Positions 2,486 through 64,000 of a stretch of DNA of 64,000 nucleotides are shown here, one piece after another (position 1 is the stretch's first letter; each line of letters opens with the position of its first letter). The position numbers and the translations under genes are program-made. Under the pieces are notes generated by a model. The model saw only the letters and a list, made by a program, of their open reading frames with translations, was not told where the DNA came from and ran no database searches. Source of the DNA: Carpediemonas membranifera BICM (lineage: Eukaryota; Protista; Fornicata); the NCBI GenBank assembly GCA_019828565.1, contig JAHDYR010000062.1, forward strand, positions 545,666-609,665, read 5' to 3'.

Positions 2486-3517
2486 TCACATGAACCACTT
2501 TACAACGTGCCAGCGGATGAGCACAAAGCCCGTCCAGCCAAGGACACCGAACCCGACAACATGACCCAGGGTAAAGGACGTCCGCAGAAGCAGCCAGGCC
2601 ATGGGACGAAGCCACTCAACCCAACGAAGTGCAGCCAGACCTACGAGAGCTCCCAATATGACCGCAGGACGGTGAATCATTAGATACGACTTGAGATAAA
2701 CAGTGATAAAGACTACGCGGACGGAAAGGGCGAGAATCTGGAACTCGACGTCGACCACAGAGGTAAGGATGAATCGTGACATGTGGAAAGCCCATGTGAC
2801 AAAGTTGGATGGGATCTGAATCTCCGATTCGGTCGAGTCAGCGGGGTCAGGTAAGTCGGCGGCCTCGGAGTCGGGGGTCTCGGGCTTGGCAGACTTGGAG
2901 GTCTCATCCTGCTGTACTTCTTCTTCTTCTTTGTCGTTGTCGTCGGCGGGGCGGGGGATGTCACCAAAGAGGACGGCGTAGTCCGCGTCAGGTCGGTCGA
3001 AGAGCATGTGGAGGCGCTTGACAGCGGCACCGAACGGGATGTTACCGAGGGGATCAATGCTGGCGACGTTATCGGTCTCTGGCTTCGAGAGTATTCTGCG
3101 GCGCTTCTTGTCGATGAAATACTTGACCCAGCAGACCGCCACGGCCACCAGCACAAGGGTGAAGCCGAGCCAGCCGACCTTGGCAGCTACGCCAAGGAGC
3201 TTGAGTGCCAGACGGAGGGGACCGCGGACAAACCACCATGTGAGCCGGAAGAAGAGGCGGATCTTCTCAAGGACGAACTTCACAATGGTCACAAGCCAGA
3301 AGATCACCACGAATGCAGCTACTTTGTGCTCACCAGCGATCTTGTTCAGGGCGGCGGCGGTGAGGCCCTTGTTCTCGAGGTAGAGACATCCACCACATCC
3401 TCGGCCGAATCTGAATCGATCAATCAAATGGCCCTTTGATTGGAATCGCGGACAAAACACCCGGCATGCAGAATACGTCCGAAAAGCTGTCCGGTTGGAC
3501 TTATTGTCTTCAATCAC
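2486..3517 (-). CDS. hypothetical multi-pass membrane protein
   Basis: 343-aa ORF with several hydrophobic segments and an acidic linker; start uncertain. Confidence 0.5.
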   Translation of the reverse strand: MIEDNKSNRTAFRTYSACRVFCPRFQSKGHLIDRFRFGRGCGGCLYLENKGLTAAALNKIAGEHKVAAFVVIFWLVTIVKFVLEKIRLFFRLTWWFVRGPLRLALKLLGVAAKVGWLGFTLVLVAVAVCWVKYFIDKKRRRILSKPETDNVASIDPLGNIPFGAAVKRLHMLFDRPDADYAVLFGDIPRPADDNDKEEEEVQQDETSKSAKPETPDSEAADLPDPADSTESEIQIPSNFVTWAFHMSRFILTSVVDVEFQILALSVRVVFITVYLKSYLMIHRPAVILGALVGLAALRWVEWLRPMAWLLLRTSFTLGHVVGFGVLGWTGFVLIRWHVVKWFM

Positions 3518-4264
3518 CGAGTAGTATCCGAGTTTATTCCATCTGTCTGTTTCTTTCCTCCCTCTTATGCAGTATCATCGTCCCCTTGTCGACCCAGATG
3601 ATGGCGTTCACCGCCTTCTTTCGCTTACAAGCATCTGCCCGTCATCCCATCAGTCGGCCCCTCACACTCAACTCGCTCGCTGATGAAGTCGACAATCATC
3701 TGCCGACGCCTGCTCGCACATAGCGCACCCTCCTAGTTATCCAATGCAGCTAAGAGCTTTCTCCGCTTGTTCCCCCATTCACTTGCGCCGTCTTTGACTT
3801 GTCCGGGTTGGGTTGATAGTCGCCCGCGTCAGTGTCGGTCGCAGTGGCATCGCTGTCGGAGTATACGAGGATGGTAGTGCCCGACGCAGAGTCCGCATCG
3901 TCGTCAGTCGACCGCTGGCAGAATGACCATGCATTGATCTTGATGCAACGACCCGCACCGTCTCGCCCATGGTCATGGCCACGCCGACAACACATGCCCT
4001 CGCCTGAAATCCGTTGCTTATTGCCGTCCCACACACCGGGCAGAGTCGGGGCCGTGCGAATGCCCACGGCCATCACCGGTCCAGACAGGATGAATGAGGC
4101 CCCCCAGCAGGAGAGACTGGCCCCTGTTAGCCGTGTGTAGCTGAACTCCAGCATGTGTCACGTGATGGTGTTGAGTAGCATCTGCGAGGTAAGGCCAGGC
4201 CAGATCTGGTGCCGAAAAACGGATTTGTTTCCAGCCAAGAAAATCGAAGGCTAAAGCCGGCCTA

Positions 4265-7009
4265 ATGCAAGCTGTTATTCTCGCTGCACTTCTCATTGCA
4301 GTTGTATGCCATCTATTTGACCAAAGATCGATCACAGTGACCTTTTCGGAGCTCCACACCCACTATACGGAGCAGGTCATCCAATCGGGCTGTAGCCTCG
4401 TCGGAATAACGCCCCCCTCGGGATGCACATTCATCTGCGAGACATTCAACGAGACTATTTCCGCCCTTCCCTTTGTTGCTGCCGTAGAACCACCCGCACC
4501 TGTCATATACGCCGATCCCGTTATCACTGATGCCTCGGGTATACGGCCAATCGGCAGCCTTGGCATCCACCGCGATGTTGTAGGCCAGTACGCCCACCTT
4601 GATACCGTCGATCACATCGTGCTTTCATTCCACCGCAGCCTGACGGACGAAGAGGTCGCGTCGTTCAACACAACACTCACAGCCGCCCTTGTCGCCGCAG
4701 ACATGCCCCCTGCCCTCGTCGAGCGCCACTTCTCCTCAGGCATCGTGCTCGGCTTCACTGACACCCCCGCCGTCGCCGCGATCCCCACGATCACCGCCCT
4801 GGACCTCCCCCTCCTCGCAGCAATCGCCCAGTCGACCCTGGCCGAGTCAGACAACGCATACGCCTCTGCCTCTATCCAGGGCATGGCCTCCAGCACCCAG
4901 GCAACAGTCAACATGCACAACCCCCACCCCCTGTGGGACCTCGGGGTCGACGGCACGGGCATCGTCGTCGGCGTGGGAGACACGGGCATGGCTCACGACC
5001 ACTGCATGTTCTACGACGACGCTGTGCCGTTCCAGAATGACACGTACCAGCCGAACCACCGCAAGATCGTGTACTACGACACCAGCGTGACCGGTGACAA
5101 TGTCGACGGCAACGGTCACGGTTCACACGTGGTCGGATCGATTCTCGGCAGCCCCAGCGACAGCACCGACCCCGGCGTCATCTACCAGGGCATGGCACCA
5201 GGCGCCAAGGCGTACTTCATCGACCTCGGGGCGGGCTCGGGCTCGGGCCTGACCCTCCCGTCGAACCTGTTCCTGGATTACTTCGACCCTGCATACAGCA
5301 AAGGCGCCACGGTTATGTCGTCGTCGTGGTCGTCCTCGCTCAGTGTCCCAGGCCCGATTTACTATTTACATTCATATAACATTGACCTGGCCGCTTATGT
5401 ATACCGTAACCTGACCATCCTCACGTCTGCAGGGAACAATGCCATGAGGTACGGCCCCTGGTCGATCGCCCAGGAGGGACTGAGTAAGAACGCCATCACA
5501 GTGGGAGCATCGACATCAGGCTACGACGCCATGATCGACTTGTATTGCCACAACACGACAAGTGTGATGGCCGCGTGCCGGGACGAGGTCAACTGGAACT
5601 GCACAGCAAAGTGTGGCTCCCTCAGTGTTGTCCCGCCAGTATTCCCAATGATTGGATCAAATTCTGTTGCAGATTTCTCAGCAATTGGAGGGTCGATCGA
5701 TAAGAGAATTAAGCCAGACATCGTGGCGCCTGGGTACTACATCATATCAGCAAACTCGTCCGGATCTACCGGCCTCACTTGTGACATGGACAATGATTTC
5801 AGGGCGGACGCAGGCACATCGATGGCGACCCCTGTGGCAGCTGGCGGCGTGGCGCTCCTTCAGGACTTCATCAGCCGGGGCATGCACTACGACGGCCGCA
5901 CCCCCAACAACACGGCCGCCTTCTTCCCCTCCAGCGCACTGGTCAGGGCGACCCTGATCGCGAGTGCCCAGAGCATGGATGGGAAGTTCTATATGATTGG
6001 ATCGCCCGAATATATGGATCTATCCAATCTTTCTGGGTGGGAGCCCAACAATTTCCGCGGCTGGGGCCGGATGGGTCTTTATAACTTGATCAAGAGCCGC
6101 CTCATCCTCAAGGACGAGGAGGATCTCCCAAGTTTCACCACAGACCGCACCGAGCAGCACTTCACGTTCGACGTCACAGCTCCCGGCCACACCCTGGACA
6201 TCGCTATGAGCTGGATCGACCCGCCCGCGGCCACGCCTACAGTGTCTGCTTCCACGTTCTACTCGACCAGCACCTCATTCCCAACGGCACACACGCTCGT
6301 GCTGTGGGTCAAGTCGCCTTCAGGCAAGTTCTTTACCGGTAATGTTCCTGGTGAGGCAACCTACTTCGACGAAGACGTCATCAACCTCAACCACCGCGTC
6401 CATATAGACGAGGCTGAGTCAGGCGCTTATTCCATCTGGGTCACCCTAAGAAGCAGTTTGTTCGTCGCCCAGCCCGTTGCCCTCGCTGTCATGGGCCAGG
6501 TCGACCCAGACTCATGGTCCGCCGGCGATGAGACCCTGCCCGCCTGTGTAGGTGGCTGTGGCGTTGGGTCGTGTGTGAACGACGCATGCGTGTGTCCTGG
6601 CGACTTCTTCGGGCCTGGGTGCGCGTCGAAGGCGCCCGTGTTTTCGGCTGATGCTTCCTCATTTACCATACCGGCTGGTGGTATCACAATCGCGAAGATT
6701 TATGAGGATACGGTGAAATCTCTCGATTCGTATCTTCTCAATATCGAGAGCAGCCTTTCTTCGACCGTTTGCACCCAATGTGAGACAGGAATGTACGTTA
6801 ATCAGCATTACATAGCCTTCATGTACGACGCTGCCATGGCAGAGCTTGGCGTTGACGTCGTCCTCCCGAATGCCTATGACCTGAACGAGAATAGGCATGC
6901 TTTTGACCTGACAGCGTTGGTTGAAGCCAGTCCAGAATATCCTCTGAATATCAAGATATACAATCTAGATCCATTTAATAATCTAACGCTATCCCACCCG
7001 GGATTGTGA
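4265..7009 (+). CDS. secreted subtilisin-like S8 serine protease (KP-43/TagC-like) with an EGF-like domain
   Basis: Signal peptide; catalytic motifs VGDTG (Asp), GHGSHVVGSI (His), SAGN (oxyanion Asn), GTSMATP (Ser); KPDIVAPG; GWGR; Cys-rich CVGGCGVGSCVNDACVCPGDFFGPGC. Confidence 0.9.
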   Translation: MQAVILAALLIAVVCHLFDQRSITVTFSELHTHYTEQVIQSGCSLVGITPPSGCTFICETFNETISALPFVAAVEPPAPVIYADPVITDASGIRPIGSLGIHRDVVGQYAHLDTVDHIVLSFHRSLTDEEVASFNTTLTAALVAADMPPALVERHFSSGIVLGFTDTPAVAAIPTITALDLPLLAAIAQSTLAESDNAYASASIQGMASSTQATVNMHNPHPLWDLGVDGTGIVVGVGDTGMAHDHCMFYDDAVPFQNDTYQPNHRKIVYYDTSVTGDNVDGNGHGSHVVGSILGSPSDSTDPGVIYQGMAPGAKAYFIDLGAGSGSGLTLPSNLFLDYFDPAYSKGATVMSSSWSSSLSVPGPIYYLHSYNIDLAAYVYRNLTILTSAGNNAMRYGPWSIAQEGLSKNAITVGASTSGYDAMIDLYCHNTTSVMAACRDEVNWNCTAKCGSLSVVPPVFPMIGSNSVADFSAIGGSIDKRIKPDIVAPGYYIISANSSGSTGLTCDMDNDFRADAGTSMATPVAAGGVALLQDFISRGMHYDGRTPNNTAAFFPSSALVRATLIASAQSMDGKFYMIGSPEYMDLSNLSGWEPNNFRGWGRMGLYNLIKSRLILKDEEDLPSFTTDRTEQHFTFDVTAPGHTLDIAMSWIDPPAATPTVSASTFYSTSTSFPTAHTLVLWVKSPSGKFFTGNVPGEATYFDEDVINLNHRVHIDEAESGAYSIWVTLRSSLFVAQPVALAVMGQVDPDSWSAGDETLPACVGGCGVGSCVNDACVCPGDFFGPGCASKAPVFSADASSFTIPAGGITIAKIYEDTVKSLDSYLLNIESSLSSTVCTQCETGMYVNQHYIAFMYDAAMAELGVDVVLPNAYDLNENRHAFDLTALVEASPEYPLNIKIYNLDPFNNLTLSHPGL

Positions 7010-54227: not shown

Positions 54228-54926
54228 CGTATTCTTCTGTCAGGTTTTGCATGAAAAAAAGTTGTAGCCTGACACGGCGGTACCATAATGCATGTTTGCC
54301 AATGCATCTGCTTGTATGCTGATAGAAGTATCACATATCGCTTTTGAAGTGATTTGGTAGGTTGGACCTAAAACTGCACGGCATAGTCTCTCAGTGATGC
54401 TCCTCCTCAAGTGCACAGCCTGCGAATCATACTGCATTTCTGTTCGTTTTATTTGTAGCTATTACATAGCGTTGCTGCCCAAAATGTGGTGCTGCTGCCG
54501 TTTCTGCGCATCCTGCCCGCTTTTCGCCAGATGATCCCTATTCAAGGCAGCGGATGGAATCTAAGCAAGCTCACGGCCTTCTTCTGACGCAACAGCCTGA
54601 GCAGCCGTGGTAGGTTGTAAATATTTTCGGTTCCGTGGGCTTGCTCACCTTGAATCTCATTGCTTGCGGCACGCCTCACTCAGATGGTGAAGGAGATTGG
54701 TGGAGTTTCCGTGTTTGACTTTGTTATCCCTTTATCCTCTCCTTGCTGCTCTTGTTTGGTGTCCACTTGCCAATTGCCAATGTGACCCAACACTTCACGA
54801 GAGTCGCCGTGAACTAATGCGATGGAGGCTCGGCGCATGATCATTGGCATCCATGCGACCTGCGCTCGAAGTGAAGGGCGTGGCTGACCCTTGTTGACCG
54901 TGGCGATTTTTCACGCTCGCGATCTG

Positions 54927-55763
54927 ATGCCCTTCGATCCCGCTACCGTTCCTGTAATCATTGATGCTGCCAAGGCCGTTGCCAAGGCCGATGCCGCTAC
55001 TGCTGCTCGTGCCATCTCCGTGCTCGATCTCACCAGCCTGAACGACAACGACACCGATGCTGTCATCGAGGCTCTTTGCAAGCGTGCTGTCAACACTGCT
55101 GGCCACACCGCCGCTGTCTGCGTCTACGCTCCCTTCATCAAGATCGCCCGCGCTGCTCTTGGCGAGAACCCCGTCAAGATTGCCACCGTGGTGAACTTCC
55201 CCGCTGGCGGCAACGACGTCGAGGCCGTCAAGGCCGAGACTGAGGCTGCTGTTGCTGACGGCGCCGATGAGATCGATCTCGTCCTCCCCTACAAGGCCTT
55301 CCTTGCCGGCGACATTGCCACGTGCGAGGCCATGCTCGACGCCACCCGCGCTGCCTGCGGCACCAAGGCCGACATGAAGGTCATCCTTGAGTCCGGCTAC
55401 TACGACGACCTCGCCAAGGTCTACGACGCCGCCCGCCTCTGCATCAAGCATGGCGCCAACTTCGTCAAGACCTCTACTGGCAAGATCCCCGTCGGCGCCA
55501 CCCCCGAGGCCGCTGTCACCATGATCACTGCTGTCCGCGACGCCAAGGCGGAGGACGGCGCCATCTGCGGCTTCAAGGCTGCCGGCGGAGTCCGCACCAC
55601 TGCTGACGCGGCCCACTACATCGCCATCGCCGACAACATCATGGGCGAGGGCTGGGCTGCCCCTGCCACCTTCCGCTTCGGCGCCAGCGGCGTCCTCACG
55701 GCTCTGCTCGAGACCTACGGCGTCGACCAGAGCGGCGAGGCCAAGCCTTCCGGCAACTACTAG
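54927..55763 (+). CDS. deoC: deoxyribose-phosphate aldolase, bacterial (E. coli DeoC-like) type
   Basis: LDLTSLNDNDTD, TAAVCVY, IATVVNFP, GADEIDLVLPY, FVKTSTGK, GFKAAGGVRT, FRFGAS and C-terminal Tyr. Confidence 0.93.
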   Translation: MPFDPATVPVIIDAAKAVAKADAATAARAISVLDLTSLNDNDTDAVIEALCKRAVNTAGHTAAVCVYAPFIKIARAALGENPVKIATVVNFPAGGNDVEAVKAETEAAVADGADEIDLVLPYKAFLAGDIATCEAMLDATRAACGTKADMKVILESGYYDDLAKVYDAARLCIKHGANFVKTSTGKIPVGATPEAAVTMITAVRDAKAEDGAICGFKAAGGVRTTADAAHYIAIADNIMGEGWAAPATFRFGASGVLTALLETYGVDQSGEAKPSGNY

Positions 55764-55885: not shown

Positions 55886-56950
55886 ATGAACAGCGACCAA
55901 ACCGCAAAAGTTACCGGTTTTGTTGCTCCTGCAAAGGGCATGACACCTCCTGCTGCCGTTAAGATTCATCAGACGACTGGCGTTCGCGTCTGGGAAGACA
56001 CTGGAAAGATTGGAGCCATCATGGTCGTTCTCGACATGACGAAGGGTGGAAACTTCCTTCGCGTGTATGATATCGACAATGGAACCATACATGTGGACAT
56101 TCCTATCGTGGGGAACGACTTCCGCTACGACAGCCTCGGCTCCCGCTTCCATTGCGCCATGGACGAGGAGACCGACACCCTCTACGGATTCAACTTCGCT
56201 GATGCCCAGGAGGCGTCGACATTCCTCTCCGCCATGTCGGCCTTCGGCCCCCAGAAGCCGCAGAAGCAGAAGAAGGAGAAGAAGAAGGGCGGCGGGCTTT
56301 TCGGCCTCTTCCGCGGCGGGCAGGCGGAGGAGATGCCCGAGCTTGAGATTGGCGCCCCCACTAACTTCGAGCACAAGTCCCACATCTCGTTTGATCCCGA
56401 GACTGGGTCGTTCGATGTATCGAAGCTCTCCAACGAGATGAAGGACATTTTCAAGCAGGCCGGCGTCCACAAGAAGGACCTTCAGTCTCCTGAGACGGCG
56501 ACCATGCTGTTCCAGGTGCTCCAGAGCGAGTTCTCCAAGGTCGAGAACAAGCCCGCGCCCCCACCGCCACCGGCTGCCAAGCGGGCCCCGCCTCCGCCCC
56601 CTGCCGCCAAGGGCAAGGCTCCCCCACCTCCACCCGGCCCCAAGGCACCCGCCCCACCGCCAGCCCCGGTGGCCCCAGCGGCCCCCGCCGAATCGGCCAA
56701 GCTCGGCGTGGACACCGAGCGTGGCTCAGCCATCGGTGCGGGGACCCGCATGTCCTTCCTGGACCAGATCAGGGCGGGGAAGGAGCTCAAGGCCGTGAAG
56801 AAGGAGGAGAAGGACGACCTCGAGATGGACGCATCCAAGCTGGACTCGAACCAGAAGAGCGGCATGGCCAACGCCATCGCAGCAGCCATGGCCCAGCGCA
56901 GAGCCGCTATGGTGGAGGACGAGGACGACGAGGATTCAGACTGGGATTAA
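55886..56950 (+). CDS. WASP-family actin nucleation-promoting factor
   Basis: WH1/EVH1 (YGFNFADAQEA..F), CRIB (IGAPTNFEHKSHI), poly-Pro, WH2 (FLDQIRAGKELKAV), C helix (IAAAMAQRR) and acidic tail with Trp (DEDSDWD). Confidence 0.93.
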   Translation: MNSDQTAKVTGFVAPAKGMTPPAAVKIHQTTGVRVWEDTGKIGAIMVVLDMTKGGNFLRVYDIDNGTIHVDIPIVGNDFRYDSLGSRFHCAMDEETDTLYGFNFADAQEASTFLSAMSAFGPQKPQKQKKEKKKGGGLFGLFRGGQAEEMPELEIGAPTNFEHKSHISFDPETGSFDVSKLSNEMKDIFKQAGVHKKDLQSPETATMLFQVLQSEFSKVENKPAPPPPPAAKRAPPPPPAAKGKAPPPPPGPKAPAPPPAPVAPAAPAESAKLGVDTERGSAIGAGTRMSFLDQIRAGKELKAVKKEEKDDLEMDASKLDSNQKSGMANAIAAAMAQRRAAMVEDEDDEDSDWD

Positions 56951-57035: not shown

Positions 57036-57497
57036 TCACGCCTTCATGACGTCCCGCGTGGCCAGGGCGGTGAGGACGCGGTTCTCCCACTCCGACTCGG
57101 GGACCTTCTTCAGTGAGTACAGGGCAGACACCATACCGGCGTCCCTGAACTCGGAAAGTCGGCTCATGTGGATTTCGTGGCCGCTTAGCTCCTCGGGGAG
57201 GGCATGGTCGGTGAATGTTGCCAGGACAGCGGCCTTGGTGTCCTTGGAGGGGCCGAATGAAGACATCGCAGCAGAGATTGACCGTGTAGGGAACATATCG
57301 GTCTTAAGCTCAGCACAAATGTGGTCAGCCTTCATCTTACCTTCCGCTTGTGCCTGCAGCGCCTTCTTTGCTCCGAATTGCAAGATTGAAAGACTCAGAA
57401 GCGTACGGGCATCGAAGACAGCCCAATCTCGATGTAAATCCGCAAACTGGCAAAAATCAAGCGATTCTGCATTAATTAGGAAGAATTGGAACTGCAT
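57036..57497 (-). CDS. KEOPS subunit CGI-121/TPRKB-like
   Basis: 'KAL......KMKADHICAEL....FPTRSISAAMSSFG' and C-terminal 'ALATRDV'. Confidence 0.75.
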   Translation of the reverse strand: MQFQFFLINAESLDFCQFADLHRDWAVFDARTLLSLSILQFGAKKALQAQAEGKMKADHICAELKTDMFPTRSISAAMSSFGPSKDTKAAVLATFTDHALPEELSGHEIHMSRLSEFRDAGMVSALYSLKKVPESEWENRVLTALATRDVMKA

Positions 57498-57798: not shown

Positions 57799-60700
57799 AT
57801 GCCGTCTGAAAATGCGGCAGGAGGCAGAAACGGTAAGAATCGGCGTTTTGATGCCACTCAACGTCATGCGGAAAGTTCATCTTCTGCGCAAGACAGTTCG
57901 ATGGCAAATACCAATCTTGCTGCGTTTGTTCAGGCAATAACCCCAGCTCCGATTACGTTCAAGCGCGTGAATGCTGTAACTAGGAAGGATGAGGTAGTAT
58001 ACAGCATGTCTAGTCTCTGGAAGACTTACGACTGCCCTTACGGCTTTCCCATTCTCATCCAGTTTGGCGGCTCTCCGGTCACCGTGCATTATACCCCCTT
58101 CCTCTCAGCCATAGAGCTCTTTCCTCGTCTCGGCGAGGGGAATTCCCCAATTCTGCAACACGCCTCGAAGTTGACGCCTGACATTCGACCCCCCTTCATC
58201 GATCAGATTGAAGCTCTCGCCCGGACCTGCCCCCAGCTCATCGAGGGCATCTCCTCAGACTTCGACATGGAGAGGTCCTGGTATTCGGTCTCGTGGTACC
58301 CCATCCTCCACGACGCCCGCACCATACCCCTGGTCCGAGGCTTCATCCTCACGTACCATCGCCTCCCGGTTTCCATGCCGGACAACACCGTCAACCCACC
58401 CTGCTCTTGGGCACCCAGCTACCCCCGCTCGCATAAGGGCTCTCCGGCGTCGTCTCGGGCCGCCTCACCCATTCCTGCAGGCGGCCACCGTCGTTCCGCC
58501 TCAAGGTCGAGTTCGGTGCTTTCTGAGTTCGGTGAGCCAGACCTAGAGCCACGCCATAGTGTGAAGTTCGACGGGAACAGGATCCTGAGCGACGCCGACC
58601 ACACTGTGATCGGATTCAGATGCCAGAGCTGCGCGCCCTCCCCCTTCCCCACCCAGACCCACAAACTCGCCCTGTACCACGCCAACCTCTGCACACACTA
58701 CAGGTACGGTGTCCCCGCCCAGCGATGCAACTACCCCGAGCCGCCTGCCATTATCGAGGAGGAGGTTGAGGCGCAGGTCGCCCAGATGGAGGCATCGGAC
58801 GCCGACACAGCTGACGAGCTGCCCTTCTGCGAGCCCCCTACGCCCCTCCCCATGCCGTCGGGTGAGTTCAGCGCTTATAGTCTGCTCGCACCCCTCGGGA
58901 GGGACGCCTCGATAGAGGACATCATCGCATCCCCTGGCTGGTGCGACCCGACGCCCGTTGTCGCCCACCCCAGCCAGATCAACGACCTCCTCGTCCGGCA
59001 CCAAGGTGACTTCGACCCAACCGTGTGGCTGCTGAGCGAAGAGTCGGATGATGACGATGACAGCCCATTCATCTCACTACCGGACGGGCGGAAGCACCTT
59101 CTGCTCCCGCCGTCGGTGCCGTACGAGAAGGTGCAGCCCGATTGGCGTCGTAAGATCGACACTCTCACTCCCGCCGCCAAGACGATCGTCAGCGGGATGA
59201 GGGGGAAGTGGAAGAGCAAGAAGGCCGAGGAGCGGGCTTTGGTGAGGCAGAGAGAGAAGGAGCTGATGGCATGCGTCAAGGACACCCTCGGAGACGACAG
59301 GACAGCCATCAATGGGATTAAGCGGGCCATCAGCAACATCGGCCGACTCCGGTCAAAGTCGAGTTCCCGCGACTTCCCTGACTCTACCTCGGACTTCTCC
59401 ATGGGAGACGCCGGCCCGGCATCCCCCGCCCAGCCCGTGTACTCACAGCCGTCGAGTCCGGTGGAGTCGGCGCCGTTCGACCGTCGGGGCCACTCTGATC
59501 AGGAGGACTATCACCCATCTGACACTTCGCACACGGATGATGAGGTCTGGTACGATCGCCAGCCAGTTCTTGCCACTGAAGATACGATAGATATCTGGGA
59601 TATGGTCTCGGATATCACCAACGAGAGATGTGGATGCCGCCGGAATTTTATCGAAACCATCGGTTTGATCCCGTACAAGATCCGATCGGATGTGTGGCAC
59701 GCGGCATCACGTCCCGAGTTGGTCTGTGCAGTTGGGGGAAAGGGCAAGCCCATCCCCGAGGCGGCGCTGACCCCAGATTACGTGACGTACTTCCTCCAGC
59801 ACTACATGATCGACCACCCGGACCTCCAGCATTGCGTGGCAGCTGGGTCGGTTGTCTCGGTTGCAGGAGGGCTCGGCTACACCGTCTCTGAGCTGTACAA
59901 CACCCTCAACCGGGCAGCCGGCAGCAGCGAAAGGGGAGGAGGCCAGCAGCATGTTGTGCCGACATCTATCCCAGTGTGGACATTCAGTCACAGTACCGCG
60001 GCGCCCCACCGGTTCGCCCACTACCCTGCCGCGAGTGTCATTCGCAACGTCAATACCCAGGCCATGAAGCAAGTCACCCTACTTGACGGCACCCAGGTCA
60101 CATGTACCGCTGACCATCGCCTCCATGTCATCCGTGAGGGCCAGACTGAACCTGTCTGGGTCATGGCTGGTGAGCTCAATGACTCCGACCGAGTCGTCAT
60201 GGGCCCTAAGCCCATCACCGAACACTTGCCGCCGCTCGAGCACGTCCTAGAGCCCAAGACGGAGGGAGACCTGCTCTTGCCCCGCATAGGGTCGGTCCAG
60301 CTCTCTCTCGTACTCCCCCTGCACCTGGCGGACATCCCCCGCGTCTCAGCTCTCGCCCGGCTGAGTGGCTACTGCATGGTGGCCGCCAGTACCAATGAAG
60401 ACGGCTCCATCGTCTGCGGCGAGTCGGCCGACGTCGAGGCCCTTGTGTCTGACATCCGCTGCATCTTGAGGACGCCCCAGCTGCCAGTCGAGTCCCAGTG
60501 GAACGACGCCTCGTCTGCATTCACGGTGAAGGCCAACGATGTTCTGGCAGAGCTGATACGGCTCTGTCTCCCTCAGGAGGGCCAGGCTGCCATCCCAGCG
60601 CTCTGGGCCGACGCACCGCCCTGGGTCGTCCGGGAGTTCCTGGCGGGCCTGTGGGGCGCCGCCGGCACCATAGCTGGACTCGTCATGCCCGACCGGAACT

Positions 60701-61290
60701 GTGCCGATGCGGTGTGCCGTCTGATGAGCAAGGTTGGAGTCCGCGCGGTGCTGGACACCGCTGGGACCATCAGGCCGCAGGAGGACGCTAGCCCCTTCGA
60801 CACCACGCTTTCGTTCGCGTACGCTGCCAGGAAGAACCGCGAGCAGGCCATCCCACTAGCTTGGCACCGTCACTGCGAGTACGCTGGCTCCGACGCCCTC
60901 GATCAGGCTGCGTTCGAGGCCCGCACCACCACGGTTATCGGTGCTCTGGCGATGCCCGTCGCGACCGTCACGGATGTCTCCGCTGAGCAACACCCCTTCT
61001 CGTTCGACATCAGCGTCGACACGCTTGACGAATCCCGGCAGAACTTCGCAGTCGACGGCGCGCTGGTTCACAACTGTAAGAAGTATGGCCTAGTGCTGCC
61101 GACCATCAGGCCGATGAGCATGGGCAACTACCACTGGACGAAGGGCGACAAGAGCTACATCCATCCTCCTGCCGGGAAGAAGTCTGGGACTTTGCGCCGC
61201 GCCCAGGGTCGCAAGAAGCAGCAGAGCGGCATTGGGAGTGACAACTGGCGCGATCGTCCAACCGGTGGGCACCAGCAGCGGAAGGGCTAG
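57799..61290 (+). CDS. DUF789-like protein precursor containing an intein
   Basis: 'NLAAFVQAITP', 'LWKTYDCPYG', 'YTPFLSAIELF', 'PPFIDQIEALA...P.L....S.D....SWYSVSWYPI', 'FILTYH.L', 'GLIPYKI...VW' and 'HPDLQH' follow the DUF789 motif order. Confidence 0.75.
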   Translation: MPSENAAGGRNGKNRRFDATQRHAESSSSAQDSSMANTNLAAFVQAITPAPITFKRVNAVTRKDEVVYSMSSLWKTYDCPYGFPILIQFGGSPVTVHYTPFLSAIELFPRLGEGNSPILQHASKLTPDIRPPFIDQIEALARTCPQLIEGISSDFDMERSWYSVSWYPILHDARTIPLVRGFILTYHRLPVSMPDNTVNPPCSWAPSYPRSHKGSPASSRAASPIPAGGHRRSASRSSSVLSEFGEPDLEPRHSVKFDGNRILSDADHTVIGFRCQSCAPSPFPTQTHKLALYHANLCTHYRYGVPAQRCNYPEPPAIIEEEVEAQVAQMEASDADTADELPFCEPPTPLPMPSGEFSAYSLLAPLGRDASIEDIIASPGWCDPTPVVAHPSQINDLLVRHQGDFDPTVWLLSEESDDDDDSPFISLPDGRKHLLLPPSVPYEKVQPDWRRKIDTLTPAAKTIVSGMRGKWKSKKAEERALVRQREKELMACVKDTLGDDRTAINGIKRAISNIGRLRSKSSSRDFPDSTSDFSMGDAGPASPAQPVYSQPSSPVESAPFDRRGHSDQEDYHPSDTSHTDDEVWYDRQPVLATEDTIDIWDMVSDITNERCGCRRNFIETIGLIPYKIRSDVWHAASRPELVCAVGGKGKPIPEAALTPDYVTYFLQHYMIDHPDLQHCVAAGSVVSVAGGLGYTVSELYNTLNRAAGSSERGGGQQHVVPTSIPVWTFSHSTAAPHRFAHYPAASVIRNVNTQAMKQVTLLDGTQVTCTADHRLHVIREGQTEPVWVMAGELNDSDRVVMGPKPITEHLPPLEHVLEPKTEGDLLLPRIGSVQLSLVLPLHLADIPRVSALARLSGYCMVAASTNEDGSIVCGESADVEALVSDIRCILRTPQLPVESQWNDASSAFTVKANDVLAELIRLCLPQEGQAAIPALWADAPPWVVREFLAGLWGAAGTIAGLVMPDRNCADAVCRLMSKVGVRAVLDTAGTIRPQEDASPFDTTLSFAYAARKNREQAIPLAWHRHCEYAGSDALDQAAFEARTTTVIGALAMPVATVTDVSAEQHPFSFDISVDTLDESRQNFAVDGALVHNCKKYGLVLPTIRPMSMGNYHWTKGDKSYIHPPAGKKSGTLRRAQGRKKQQSGIGSDNWRDRPTGGHQQRKG
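59833..61074 (+). mobile_element. intein (414 aa) with a degenerate LAGLIDADG homing endonuclease
   Basis: Block A C-VAAGSVV, block B DGTQVTCTADH, WVMAGEL...D.V, block C ARLSGYCMVA, block E EFLAGLWGAAG, block F FDISV...NFAVDG and block G LVHN followed by +1 Cys. Confidence 0.92.
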
Positions 61291-61324
61291 ATTTGATACG
61301 GATATTTTAAATTTCGAGGGTGGA

Positions 61325-62722
61325 TCAGAGTGGAACGCTAGCCTTAGCACACAGTTTCTCCAGGACAGTTTCATACAAAGTGGCGTAGTCGACGGGCTCG
61401 GGAATGGCCAGCTTGCCGAGGACTGACCGTTGCAGCTCAGGCGACCCGTTCACAACGATGTCACAGACAGATGCCGCCAGCTGGGGGAGGTGGACCGACC
61501 GCACGAGCTTAGCATCCTTGGTCGCGGGGTCCTCGATGGAGGGACACGCCTGGAGCAAGCTGTCGACAGCACTCTTATGGGCCTTCCTGAGGTCACTCTT
61601 CTGCTTGTTGTTGAGGATCACTGACCGCTTCATTGCATTGGAAAACCTGACCCCGCTGGCGACGATGAATACTGAGAGTGAGTGTAGGCCAGGCACAGGC
61701 TGACACTCAGATTTGAGTGAATCAAATGACGAGTTCAATTCTACCGCCTTCCACTGAGTTGGACCGAGGCCCAGAGCTCTGCTGAACTGCCGCATGGCGC
61801 ACATCAGGTCGCATGACGTCTTTGGGCCGAGTGGCACCCCGTTGGCAAGGCGGTAAACATGAACGGCAGTCTTGCCATTGTTGGGTAAAGTAGAGAGGCT
61901 GGCCACACATAGCACAGTAAATGGGCCGTACTCAGCTGCGACAGTGTGCAGGGGATGGGGCATTCTATGGCACAGGGCCCGTGCAGCGACACCCATGTCG
62001 ACCGGGTCCGACACGACGCCACCGTAGCGCACCCCAATGGGGCCGGCACCGACACGCCACAGGTCGAGGTAGCTGTCGATGTCCCGCAGTGCTGTTTGAT
62101 CAGCTATGGCGACAACTCGGATGGTGGTGCCCTCCAGAGAGGTGGGGCATGGGGTGGAGGCAAGCTTGGTCGTAGGGGCATGCCCTGACACCGTCCAGGC
62201 CATATGATGCATTGATAGATCGCCCAGAGTGGTGCTAAGGACTTCTGCGGGGACACCACTGCTGAGAAATGCCCAGACGGCTGCGAACTTGGCCCCGAGT
62301 CCGTACAGACCGGTGGTCTCGGCCTCAGGGTCAATGTCGTTCCCCTTTGTGCTGGTAAATAGTTTCCCGAGGAGAGAAGGCATTTCCTGCGCTGGAATAC
62401 CGTGGCCGCTGTCTGAGATGGTCATGGTCACCAGCACGGGGTCACAGTGAAGGAAATCAACATGCGACGAGGATAATGGGGATGCTAGCAGGTTTTGAAT
62501 TGCCTGCGATGTCTCATACTCGTCATGCTGCTCGATGTTGATCTCAATCATCTTGTTCTCGCATTCTGTTACGGCGTCTATAGCGTTCTCGAAGAGTTCT
62601 CGGAATGAAAGGAAGAATGCGCTCCGAAGATCAGTAAAATGACTCAAAAACCATCGAAGCACAGTGTCTTGCGTTTGATTCATCGTGCACACAAGTTTCC
62701 GGTTTCCGCCCACATATGACAT
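61325..62722 (-). CDS. topoisomerase VI subunit B-like protein (GHKL; MTOPVIB/TOPOVIBL-like)
   Basis: Bergerat motifs FRELFENAIDA, ISDSGHGI, FTSTK, TGLYGLGAK and GTTI; transducer 'RLANGVPL' and 'F.NAMK'. Confidence 0.8.
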   Translation of the reverse strand: MSYVGGNRKLVCTMNQTQDTVLRWFLSHFTDLRSAFFLSFRELFENAIDAVTECENKMIEINIEQHDEYETSQAIQNLLASPLSSSHVDFLHCDPVLVTMTISDSGHGIPAQEMPSLLGKLFTSTKGNDIDPEAETTGLYGLGAKFAAVWAFLSSGVPAEVLSTTLGDLSMHHMAWTVSGHAPTTKLASTPCPTSLEGTTIRVVAIADQTALRDIDSYLDLWRVGAGPIGVRYGGVVSDPVDMGVAARALCHRMPHPLHTVAAEYGPFTVLCVASLSTLPNNGKTAVHVYRLANGVPLGPKTSCDLMCAMRQFSRALGLGPTQWKAVELNSSFDSLKSECQPVPGLHSLSVFIVASGVRFSNAMKRSVILNNKQKSDLRKAHKSAVDSLLQACPSIEDPATKDAKLVRSVHLPQLAASVCDIVVNGSPELQRSVLGKLAIPEPVDYATLYETVLEKLCAKASVPL

Positions 62723-62869
62723 AACCTGCACCTGTAAAATAAGCGCCGAAGAACGGCAGAGCGTGGCAAGACGCGCTGATACTGACGTCGATCGTCTGCT
62801 TTGAGTCATTTGATGTAGATTCTCGACTTCTCCAATTCTATCCGGACACGAGAAACGAAGGCCAGTAAC

Positions 62870-64000
62870 ATGGTTACTTCGGGTCATGAGGCAACTTCAA
62901 CCGTGGTTGATGCAATTACAGTCATCGATGAACTAGACTTCAAGTGTTTGAACCCGAGTGGCATCCGCAGCGCACAGAGCAGCCTTCAACGCGTCGAAAA
63001 CTATCTTACGACCGAGAAGGTCACGGCTACACCTGAGATTCACGATCGCCTTGCGGATATATACTCTCGGTATAAGATGCTTGTCGATCGGCTTGCCACT
63101 GATGCCTCATCTCCGCAGCTCACCTCATCCCCGAAGCACCAGCCTGTCCTGGAGCTCTCTGAGTTCGCCTCCAACCAGCTCCTCGCCATACACCTAGCTC
63201 TCGACGTTTCTGCATGCGCTGTTACACTCGCAGACCTCTGTTTCCGCGAGGAGCTCGCCTCGAGTGTCCCCGACGACCTGTGCCACCTCGCTGTGCTTGT
63301 TTTCAGGCACGCACTCACTACCGTGCTTGCCCCTAGTACTAACAAGGATGTGTCTACCTCAAACGCCGTCATTGCAGGTGTCTCATCCCGTGTTGCGCTC
63401 CTCCTTCTCGGCCTTGCCAAAGTCACCCCGGGGATGTCGGAGAGCACCACAGAGACGCTCGCATATAACCTTATGTCAAAGGACACCCTGTTCAGAGGCG
63501 ATGCACCCCTAGCCGACGCCTCCTTCGCCGCCGTCAAGACACTGTGCAGTTTAAGGGAGCATGTACCGACGTTCTCCCTCGAGGACATGGCCCAGCAGCT
63601 GGCACACCAGGTTCCAATGATCGCCCAGGGCACTAAGAAGGGCTCTATCACCCTCCTGCCCCAGGTCAAGGTCCGTCCGCTGTCGTTCCTCGCCCTCGAG
63701 TTGTACACGGCTTCACCGCCCGACACAACCCCCGATACCATCCATGCCCACGTCAAGGAGGTCAACCGGTGTCTCCACACAGTTGTCATGGCGGGCCTCG
63801 CCCATCGGTCCCTCGTGCTCGAGCTGTGCGAGGACCTCGAGGCCATCGTGCTCGTCGGCCCCAGCTTCCCCGGCGCCATTGATGCGCTATCCTGTATCAT
63901 CCAGACGTGTCACGCTGTGGTGAACGCCGCGCTGCAGGGCAAGACTCTCCCCATGGAATCTGGAGACGTGAAGGATGCCCTCAAGACGGCCGTCAGCGCC
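62870..64000 (+). CDS. large helical hypothetical protein, 3'-truncated by the window edge
   Basis: Frame opens at ATG 62870 (MVTSGHEATSTVVDAITVIDELDF...) with coding-like codon usage; absent from the ORF track, consistent with no stop before the window end. Confidence 0.6.
   Translation, partial: MVTSGHEATSTVVDAITVIDELDFKCLNPSGIRSAQSSLQRVENYLTTEKVTATPEIHDRLADIYSRYKMLVDRLATDASSPQLTSSPKHQPVLELSEFASNQLLAIHLALDVSACAVTLADLCFREELASSVPDDLCHLAVLVFRHALTTVLAPSTNKDVSTSNAVIAGVSSRVALLLLGLAKVTPGMSESTTETLAYNLMSKDTLFRGDAPLADASFAAVKTLCSLREHVPTFSLEDMAQQLAHQVPMIAQGTKKGSITLLPQVKVRPLSFLALELYTASPPDTTPDTIHAHVKEVNRCLHTVVMAGLAHRSLVLELCEDLEAIVLVGPSFPGAIDALSCIIQTCHAVVNAALQGKTLPMESGDVKDALKTAVSA

Follow-up and report, generated by a model that had tools for sequence, protein, structure and literature searches.

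The 64,000-nucleotide window analysed here lies on contig C54 (positions 545666–609665) of the Carpediemonas membranifera assembly that also served as the searched genome (24,237,836 bases in 69 contigs; published as 24.2 Mb, 69 contigs and 57.1% GC, PMC8516963). It carries a gene whose single 1163-residue frame divides into a 678-residue N-extein with a DUF789 domain, a 414-residue insert and a 71-residue C-extein (Table 1). Our confidence is high that the insert is a genuine intein and that its nuclease is dead.

Table 1 Features of the DUF789 gene, its intein and the neighbouring genes (window coordinates).
Feature	Position	Strand	Basis
Host gene, single open frame, 1163 amino acids (aa) from first ATG	57799–61290	+	Open reading frame list and translation
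DUF789 (PF05623), profile positions 1–77 and 146–229	57910–58395	+	Pfam, 72.6 bits (cut-off 25.5)
About 400 aa, mostly low-complexity, without Pfam match, separating two DUF789-like parts	58399–59598	+	Pfam search
Putative final DUF789 motifs, GLIPYKIRSDVW...HPDLQH, aa 621–678, intein directly after	59659–59832	+	Likeness to plant motifs; no Pfam or Atlas match
Class 1 intein, 414 aa, single-copy in the genome (host aa 679–1092)	59833–61074	+	Profiles, hidden Markov model, fold model
N-terminal splicing region: C1; block B T92-x-x-H95 at 60106–60117; W109	59833–60201	+	Alignment, model
Degenerate two-motif LAGLIDADG domain; A184 (60382–60384) and A277 (60661–60663), both codon GCC	60328–60882	+	Alignment, fold
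C-terminal splicing region: block F D392 at 61006; H413-N414 at 61069–61074	60943–61074	+	Alignment, model
C-extein: +1 Cys, 71-aa basic Gly-rich tail, net charge +13	61075–61290	+	Translation
Deoxyribose-phosphate aldolase-like gene	54891–55763	+	Read from sequence
WASP-like gene (WH1, PBD)	55886–56950	+	Pfam
CGI-121	57036–57497	-	Pfam
GHKL ATPase, convergent with the DUF789 gene	61325–62887	-	Pfam

The assignment of the host to DUF789, proposed in an earlier sequence-only reading of this DNA, passes the curated Pfam cut-off, with an alignment limited to profile positions 1–229 of 296 (host residues ~38–199); a profile search of the whole assembly detected a single DUF789 gene. The same reading took HPDLQH as the terminal motif of the domain, which Pfam does not confirm: residues 600–678, where profile positions 230–296 with the HPD would fall, gave no usable match in Pfam or Atlas. 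Residues 621–678 are a putative end of DUF789 by their likeness to the plant motifs GLASYK..W and HPDFxFF; if this is right, the intein occupies the final conserved position of the domain, which in plant members is aromatic, with only the basic tail downstream. The role of DUF789 is known from predictions only, made in two plant surveys. An Atlas feature search with residues 30–200 (57886–58398) returned clusters of Tet_JBP/2OG-Fe(II) oxygenases (0.91–0.92; 155 shared features at 0.92), which hints only weakly at how DUF789 may fold. The low-complexity region that separates the DUF789-like parts includes a brief Cys/His-rich stretch.

Contigs built from the read sets X1 and X2 span 57814–61323 and leave the flanking intergenic DNA uncovered. 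The two sets are possibly one, their read type is unrecorded, and we infer that they derive from RNA from the way coverage stops at the limits of the gene. One 1908-nucleotide contig, present in both, is identical to the window through both intein junctions and free of joints, and is probably RNA. Because it passes both junctions unchanged, the insert is neither an intron nor a product of misassembly; the gene shows no joints or variant letters.

The insert is in frame and free of stops, starts with Cys (59833) after HPDLQH and ends VHN before the +1 Cys (61075). Its block B reads TADH, with T92 at 60106 and H95 at 60115; among 31 aligned inteins T92 and H95 are invariant and D392 is nearly so, the last being the block F Asp of class 1 rather than the Cys of class 3. 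H413 and N414 are conserved in the same alignment. The frame, the 414-codon length, both boundaries and the complete set of splicing residues (C1, TxxH, block F Asp, His-Asn and +1 Cys) are thus as the sequence-only reading had described them. In profile searches the likeness to inteins exceeds chance: Pfam Intein_splicing matches it at E 4.5e-7 (30.2 bits, below the curated cut-off of 35.8), TIGR01445 at E 0.017, and a hidden Markov model (HMM) built from seven relatives outside Carpediemonas gives 75 bits. The window scan returned no Pfam match to Hint, Hint_2, Vint or PT-HINT, and a PDB sequence search found nothing.

The nuclease has decayed, as that reading had also claimed. Neither LAGLIDADG motif holds an acidic catalytic residue: positions 184 and 277 are both Ala, and Asp stands at each in 93% of 29 relatives. 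Pfam LAGLIDADG does not match the insert.

An AlphaFold2 model of the intein from 31 sequences (predicted local distance difference test (pLDDT) score 83.5, predicted template modelling (pTM) score 0.86) supersedes an earlier one from 10 sequences (pLDDT 48.6). When it was compared with the PDB by Foldseek, endonuclease-bearing inteins came out on top (TliVMA at 4e-12, PI-PfuI and PI-SceI), and the 46 structure matches at E ≤ 0.001 were inteins or LAGLIDADG enzymes throughout among the matches listed. In Atlas the top match was an RPB2 intein cluster of Nucleocytoviricota (TM 0.78), and among viral models the RNA polymerases of Pithovirus, Cedratvirus and Hyperionvirus led (TMq 0.71 to that of Pithovirus). 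The predicted fold matches Hint plus LAGLIDADG, closest to the inteins of giant-virus RNA polymerases. PI-SceI (yeast VMA1), PI-PfuI and TliVMA share with the modelled intein the Hint fold, the inserted two-motif LAGLIDADG domain and the class 1 residues, but differ in being homing elements, active or allelic, of conserved enzymes and are only 10–16% identical to it. Hedgehog-type and bacterial intein-like Hint domains resemble it in lying near a protein C-terminus; unlike it, they are not known to have an embedded LAGLIDADG domain or His-Asn/Cys (here and below, a slash marks a splice junction or insertion point).

A search of 1.84 billion representatives produced one close relative, P0002 (44% identity over all 414 residues, E 7e-74), with all other matches weak (E 1e-6 to 1e-3). 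Word-based homologue searches, restricted to sequences 0.55–1.75 times the query length, found only the window intein itself (P0001) and P0002, and scans of viruses gave no matches, whether the query was the Carpediemonas intein pair, a single PolB intein or the DUF789 portion of the host. The match to P0003 (E 4e-8), a repeat protein from a bird, was rejected as spurious. The wider family, to which the window intein belongs by the HMM (75 bits) and by structure (TM 0.6–0.78), includes inteins of Nucleocytoviricota RPB2 and PolB (Pithovirus, Cedratvirus, Hyperionvirus and Pandoravirus) and of Steroidobacteraceae aconitase. These share the CT[PA]DH block B and the R-x-x-G-Y and EFL-x-G motifs with the window intein, and differ from it in identity (18–26%), in keeping both catalytic aspartates and in length (mostly 490–540 residues against 414). 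The weak matches, together with further viral and bacterial loci, place family members at three PolB sites and two RPB2 sites and in a D5 primase, an aconitase, a UBA-type enzyme and, on a contig that looks eukaryotic, a PPP phosphatase. The family, which occupies many unrelated Cys or Ser sites, is promiscuous and centred on giant viruses, as are the virus-linked clusters of Anaeramoeba (PMC10710043). Both aspartates are kept in nearly all relatives outside Carpediemonas. In a tree the two Carpediemonas inteins pair with 100/100 support and share a long branch, which the tree does not place firmly within the family.

Several of these relatives can be described individually. The aconitase inteins, at GCTT/C and with mostly intact nuclease motifs, occur in 13 Steroidobacteraceae or gammaproteobacterial genomes (L021–L033:2501–4054), at a site adjoining a Cys that we take to be an Fe-S ligand. 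Two metagenome contigs of eukaryotic appearance carry family inteins, one in a UBA3-like enzyme at RLPEH/C (P0005, L080:307–2139) and one in a PPP phosphatase at EKIF/C, beside Vps54 (P0010, L081:8001–11564).

A TIGR01443 search detected two further inteins in the C. membranifera genome, which score 11 and 1 bits against the HMM of the family and are unrelated to it. One (C8:695384–698434) ends HN/CGVFAK in a protein that we read as a CoA-substrate activase; the other (C6:1603923–1606985) is a mini-intein that ends HN/T in a Na/K-ATPase. With these, and with the family widespread at unrelated sites, the window intein is not the lone oddity that the sequence-only reading had made of it.

The closest relative does not occupy the orthologous site. 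P0002 and its two flanks form one frame at 2909–5902 of PPCM01002416.1 (GCA_002919055.1), probably from C. frisia judging by GC and by orthologue identity (72% and 52%). Its N-extein is the N-terminal half of arginine deiminase (ADI), ending DRMHLD, and its C-extein the C-terminal half of a ThiI/MnmA-like protein with an NFACT-R domain, starting CKINM; an intron lies just upstream of the frame, in the 5′ end of ADI. In C. membranifera, ADI and the ThiI/MnmA-like protein are separate, intact genes, empty at DRMHLD/CTS and NPCVD/CKINM, and the ThiI-like NPCxD/C site is invariant in 31 bacterial homologues. The join in P0002 therefore coincides exactly with a conserved Cys in both genes. The two halves, each without the rest of its enzyme, are still conserved relative to their orthologues (non-synonymous divergence, dN, of 0.25 and 0.41, below the synonymous divergence, dS). 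On the simplest reading, ADI and the ThiI-like gene each carry an almost identical intein, and assembly from short reads fused the two copies; the single copy found there is what a collapsed repeat would leave; the chimera may also be a recent real rearrangement. Whichever holds, the Cys codons of ADI and of the ThiI-like gene are both sites of the Carpediemonas intein lineage. Synteny is uninformative on the join, with neighbours that map to contigs C26, C63, and C11 or C2. A kinase downstream of the chimera (6007–6281) matches best at C11:161494, 40 kb from ADI (75%), with a paralogue at C2:395737 (66–69%), a match too weak to decide the matter.

The sister copy also bears on whether the insert splices. 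If the insert were splicing-dead, or capable of N-terminal cleavage only, DUF789 might tolerate it since the site ends the domain; the score below the Pfam cut-off, the changes at usually conserved splicing-domain positions (T6S, G74N and A407V) and the scarcity of host structure downstream would fit. We consider this highly improbable, as all catalytic splicing residues are present, the splicing halves are the best conserved parts between the two copies (52–57% identity, against 40% in the nuclease), and P0002 has the same changes in enzyme hosts that would require ligation. From its residues and modelled fold, the window intein is instead predicted to be competent by the standard class 1 route: T92 and H95 would help an N–S acyl shift at C1, D392 would help the transthioesterification onto the +1 Cys that follows, and H413 would help the cyclization of Asn414, to yield a 749-residue host protein and a free 414-residue intein.

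Measured against the family, both Carpediemonas inteins carry D277A and C331A, an insertion of 19 columns, and deletions that remove 6, 10, 8 and ~58 reference columns. As D277A and the large deletions are common to the pair, homing was probably dead in their common ancestor. Synonymous divergence is the same (pS 0.63) between the two inteins as between the ADI orthologues, and the GC content at third codon positions follows that of each host (0.77 against 0.73–0.79, and 0.89 against 0.87–0.93). Although near saturation, these figures fit one old acquisition with loss of the nuclease before the species split.

We consider it moderately probable that the intein, taken to be splicing-competent and homing-dead, was moved among unrelated genes by host recombination. 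On this account a single acquisition would have brought it in from the family that occurs in PolB and RPB2 of Nucleocytoviricota and in other eukaryotes; the endonuclease would have died before the two copies diverged; and copies would then have reached unrelated Cys codons by host recombination or end-joining, at microhomologies only a few bases long around TGY-A. The intein would persist because only an exact loss is harmless. Metamonads are without canonical non-homologous end joining (NHEJ), and C. membranifera retains homologous recombination and alternative end-joining (PMC8516963). Movement by host repair, once homing had gone, explains the pattern most economically.

Its main rival, which we judge fairly unlikely, is that the DUF789, ADI and ThiI-like genes were invaded while the endonuclease was active, by homing of relaxed specificity, and that gene conversion and differential loss came later. 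The relatives, with their aspartates and many unrelated sites, speak for it, as do the relaxed viral endonucleases proposed for Anaeramoeba (PMC10710043). The three target sites of the lineage (DUF789 H/CK, ADI D/CT and ThiI/MnmA-like D/CK) have only TGY-A in common at the DNA level, which, together with the TGYAAG shared by two of them and the GAC/TGCA shared by two, could also reflect such targeting. Invasion by an active nuclease would, however, require two exact losses in C. membranifera, whose ADI and ThiI-like sites are intact and unoccupied, and entire deletions would have to be converted between copies that are not linked.

Several points weigh against movement by host repair itself. 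Splicing is a prediction from residues and modelled fold. The C. membranifera genome holds no second or near-identical copy of the intein that we could find, neither paralogue nor donor, so movement is not directly visible there. P0002 is known from one short-read contig of 6.3 kb with an inferred species name. The catalytic position of motif 1 is Ala in the window intein and Thr in P0002, so part of the nuclease decay may be independent, and dating is rough because synonymous sites are near saturation. No empty DUF789 allele was seen in the X1 and X2 contigs, which drop rare variants, and the word-based and virus searches retrieved no DUF789 homologue or orthologue, so that neither the direction of the move nor its date can be fixed.

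The sequence-only reading had offered two fates for the element, an ageing parasite or a domesticated post-translational switch. The former fits the complete splicing set and the decayed nuclease. In the latter, conditional splicing or cleavage would set whether the basic tail joins DUF789. Retention of the splicing residues would suit a switch, as would a dN/dS below 1 along the intein, dead nuclease included (about 0.25–0.4), an apparently transcribed host gene and the conditional splicing known for some prokaryotic inteins (cited in PMC10710043). Purifying selection is, however, expected for any intein that must fold to be excised, the pair conserves no additional Cys beside C1 that would hint at conditional splicing, and the presence of the sister intein in other genes argues against a role specific to DUF789. 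We found no sign of regulation and think a switch very unlikely.

A further possibility, compatible with movement by host repair, concerns the C-extein, for which the C. membranifera genome yielded no paralogue or donor. The window gene could itself be a chimera, in which recombination through the intein attached a foreign C-extein to a nearly complete DUF789, with the tail an eroded remnant of the ThiI/MnmA-like C-terminal half. Within the first 15 residues of the tail, CK, KYG, VL and RPMS are colinear with the start of that half. The tail begins CK as the ThiI-like site does, and Lys follows Cys in 2.5% of control fragments; an anchored alignment with cheap gaps outscores 446/446 control fragments, a 33-sequence family profile gives p 0.01–0.04 against natural fragments, and P0002 demonstrates that such joins arise. 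DUF789 proteins carry an aromatic residue at the position of the +1 Cys and end soon after. On the other side, the likeness is non-significant at standard gap costs (p 0.15–0.5), shuffles that keep CK give p 0.02–1.0 depending on the gap setting, the family profile reaches p values above 0.1 at some settings, HMMER scores only 0.2 bits, and DUF789 could plausibly end natively in this way, with a short helix behind HPD and then a disordered, basic tail. Because the test parameters were picked after the match had been seen, we treat this origin as a lead and consider it fairly unlikely. Less likely still is the broader idea that homing-dead inteins act as recombination joints in vivo and shuffle protein halves, with the ADI/ThiI-like fusion real and the window gene an older product; if true, protein splicing would render fusions joined by inteins seamless.

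The genes of the window are dense and mostly intron-poor. The downstream GHKL ATPase is without any X1–X4 contig over 61342–62000, although its neighbours are covered, and loose ends of X3 and X4 at CGI-121 look like library adapters.

The closest published system is that of Anaeramoeba (Gallot-Lavallee et al. 2023, PMC10710043). Its inteins, above all those of the virus-linked multi-host clusters 15 and 17, are likewise nuclear, Nucleocytoviricota-related, in novel hosts of an anaerobic metamonad and spread to non-allelic sites, and many of its old copies are without an obvious endonuclease. The main text of that paper does not name DUF789, arginine deiminase or ThiI/MnmA-like hosts, nor does it describe a two-host chimera through an intein; Anaeramoeba, moreover, has NHEJ and Carpediemonas does not. 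In the literature searched, with Anaeramoeba represented by that main text, no intein is reported for Carpediemonas, DUF789 or ADI, and a 2018 survey names none of DUF789, ADI and ThiI-like proteins as hosts. The sequence-only reading knew of no DUF789 intein site, and we found no published record of the host or the site. What is new is thus the DUF789 site, whereas inteins in novel hosts and non-allelic spread are already published for Anaeramoeba; because dozens were shown there, an intein in a new host is by itself only moderately notable.

The Carpediemonas pair offers a two-species test case of how inteins enter new genes: one intein lineage, with a nuclease apparently dead in its ancestor, is linked to three unrelated cysteine sites. 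The case suggests that an insert of this kind can move to another gene with no cutting enzyme of its own. It brings in as a host a protein that is not an enzyme and whose function is unknown, and strengthens the case for Carpediemonas, which is without NHEJ, as a second intein-rich metamonad beside Anaeramoeba.

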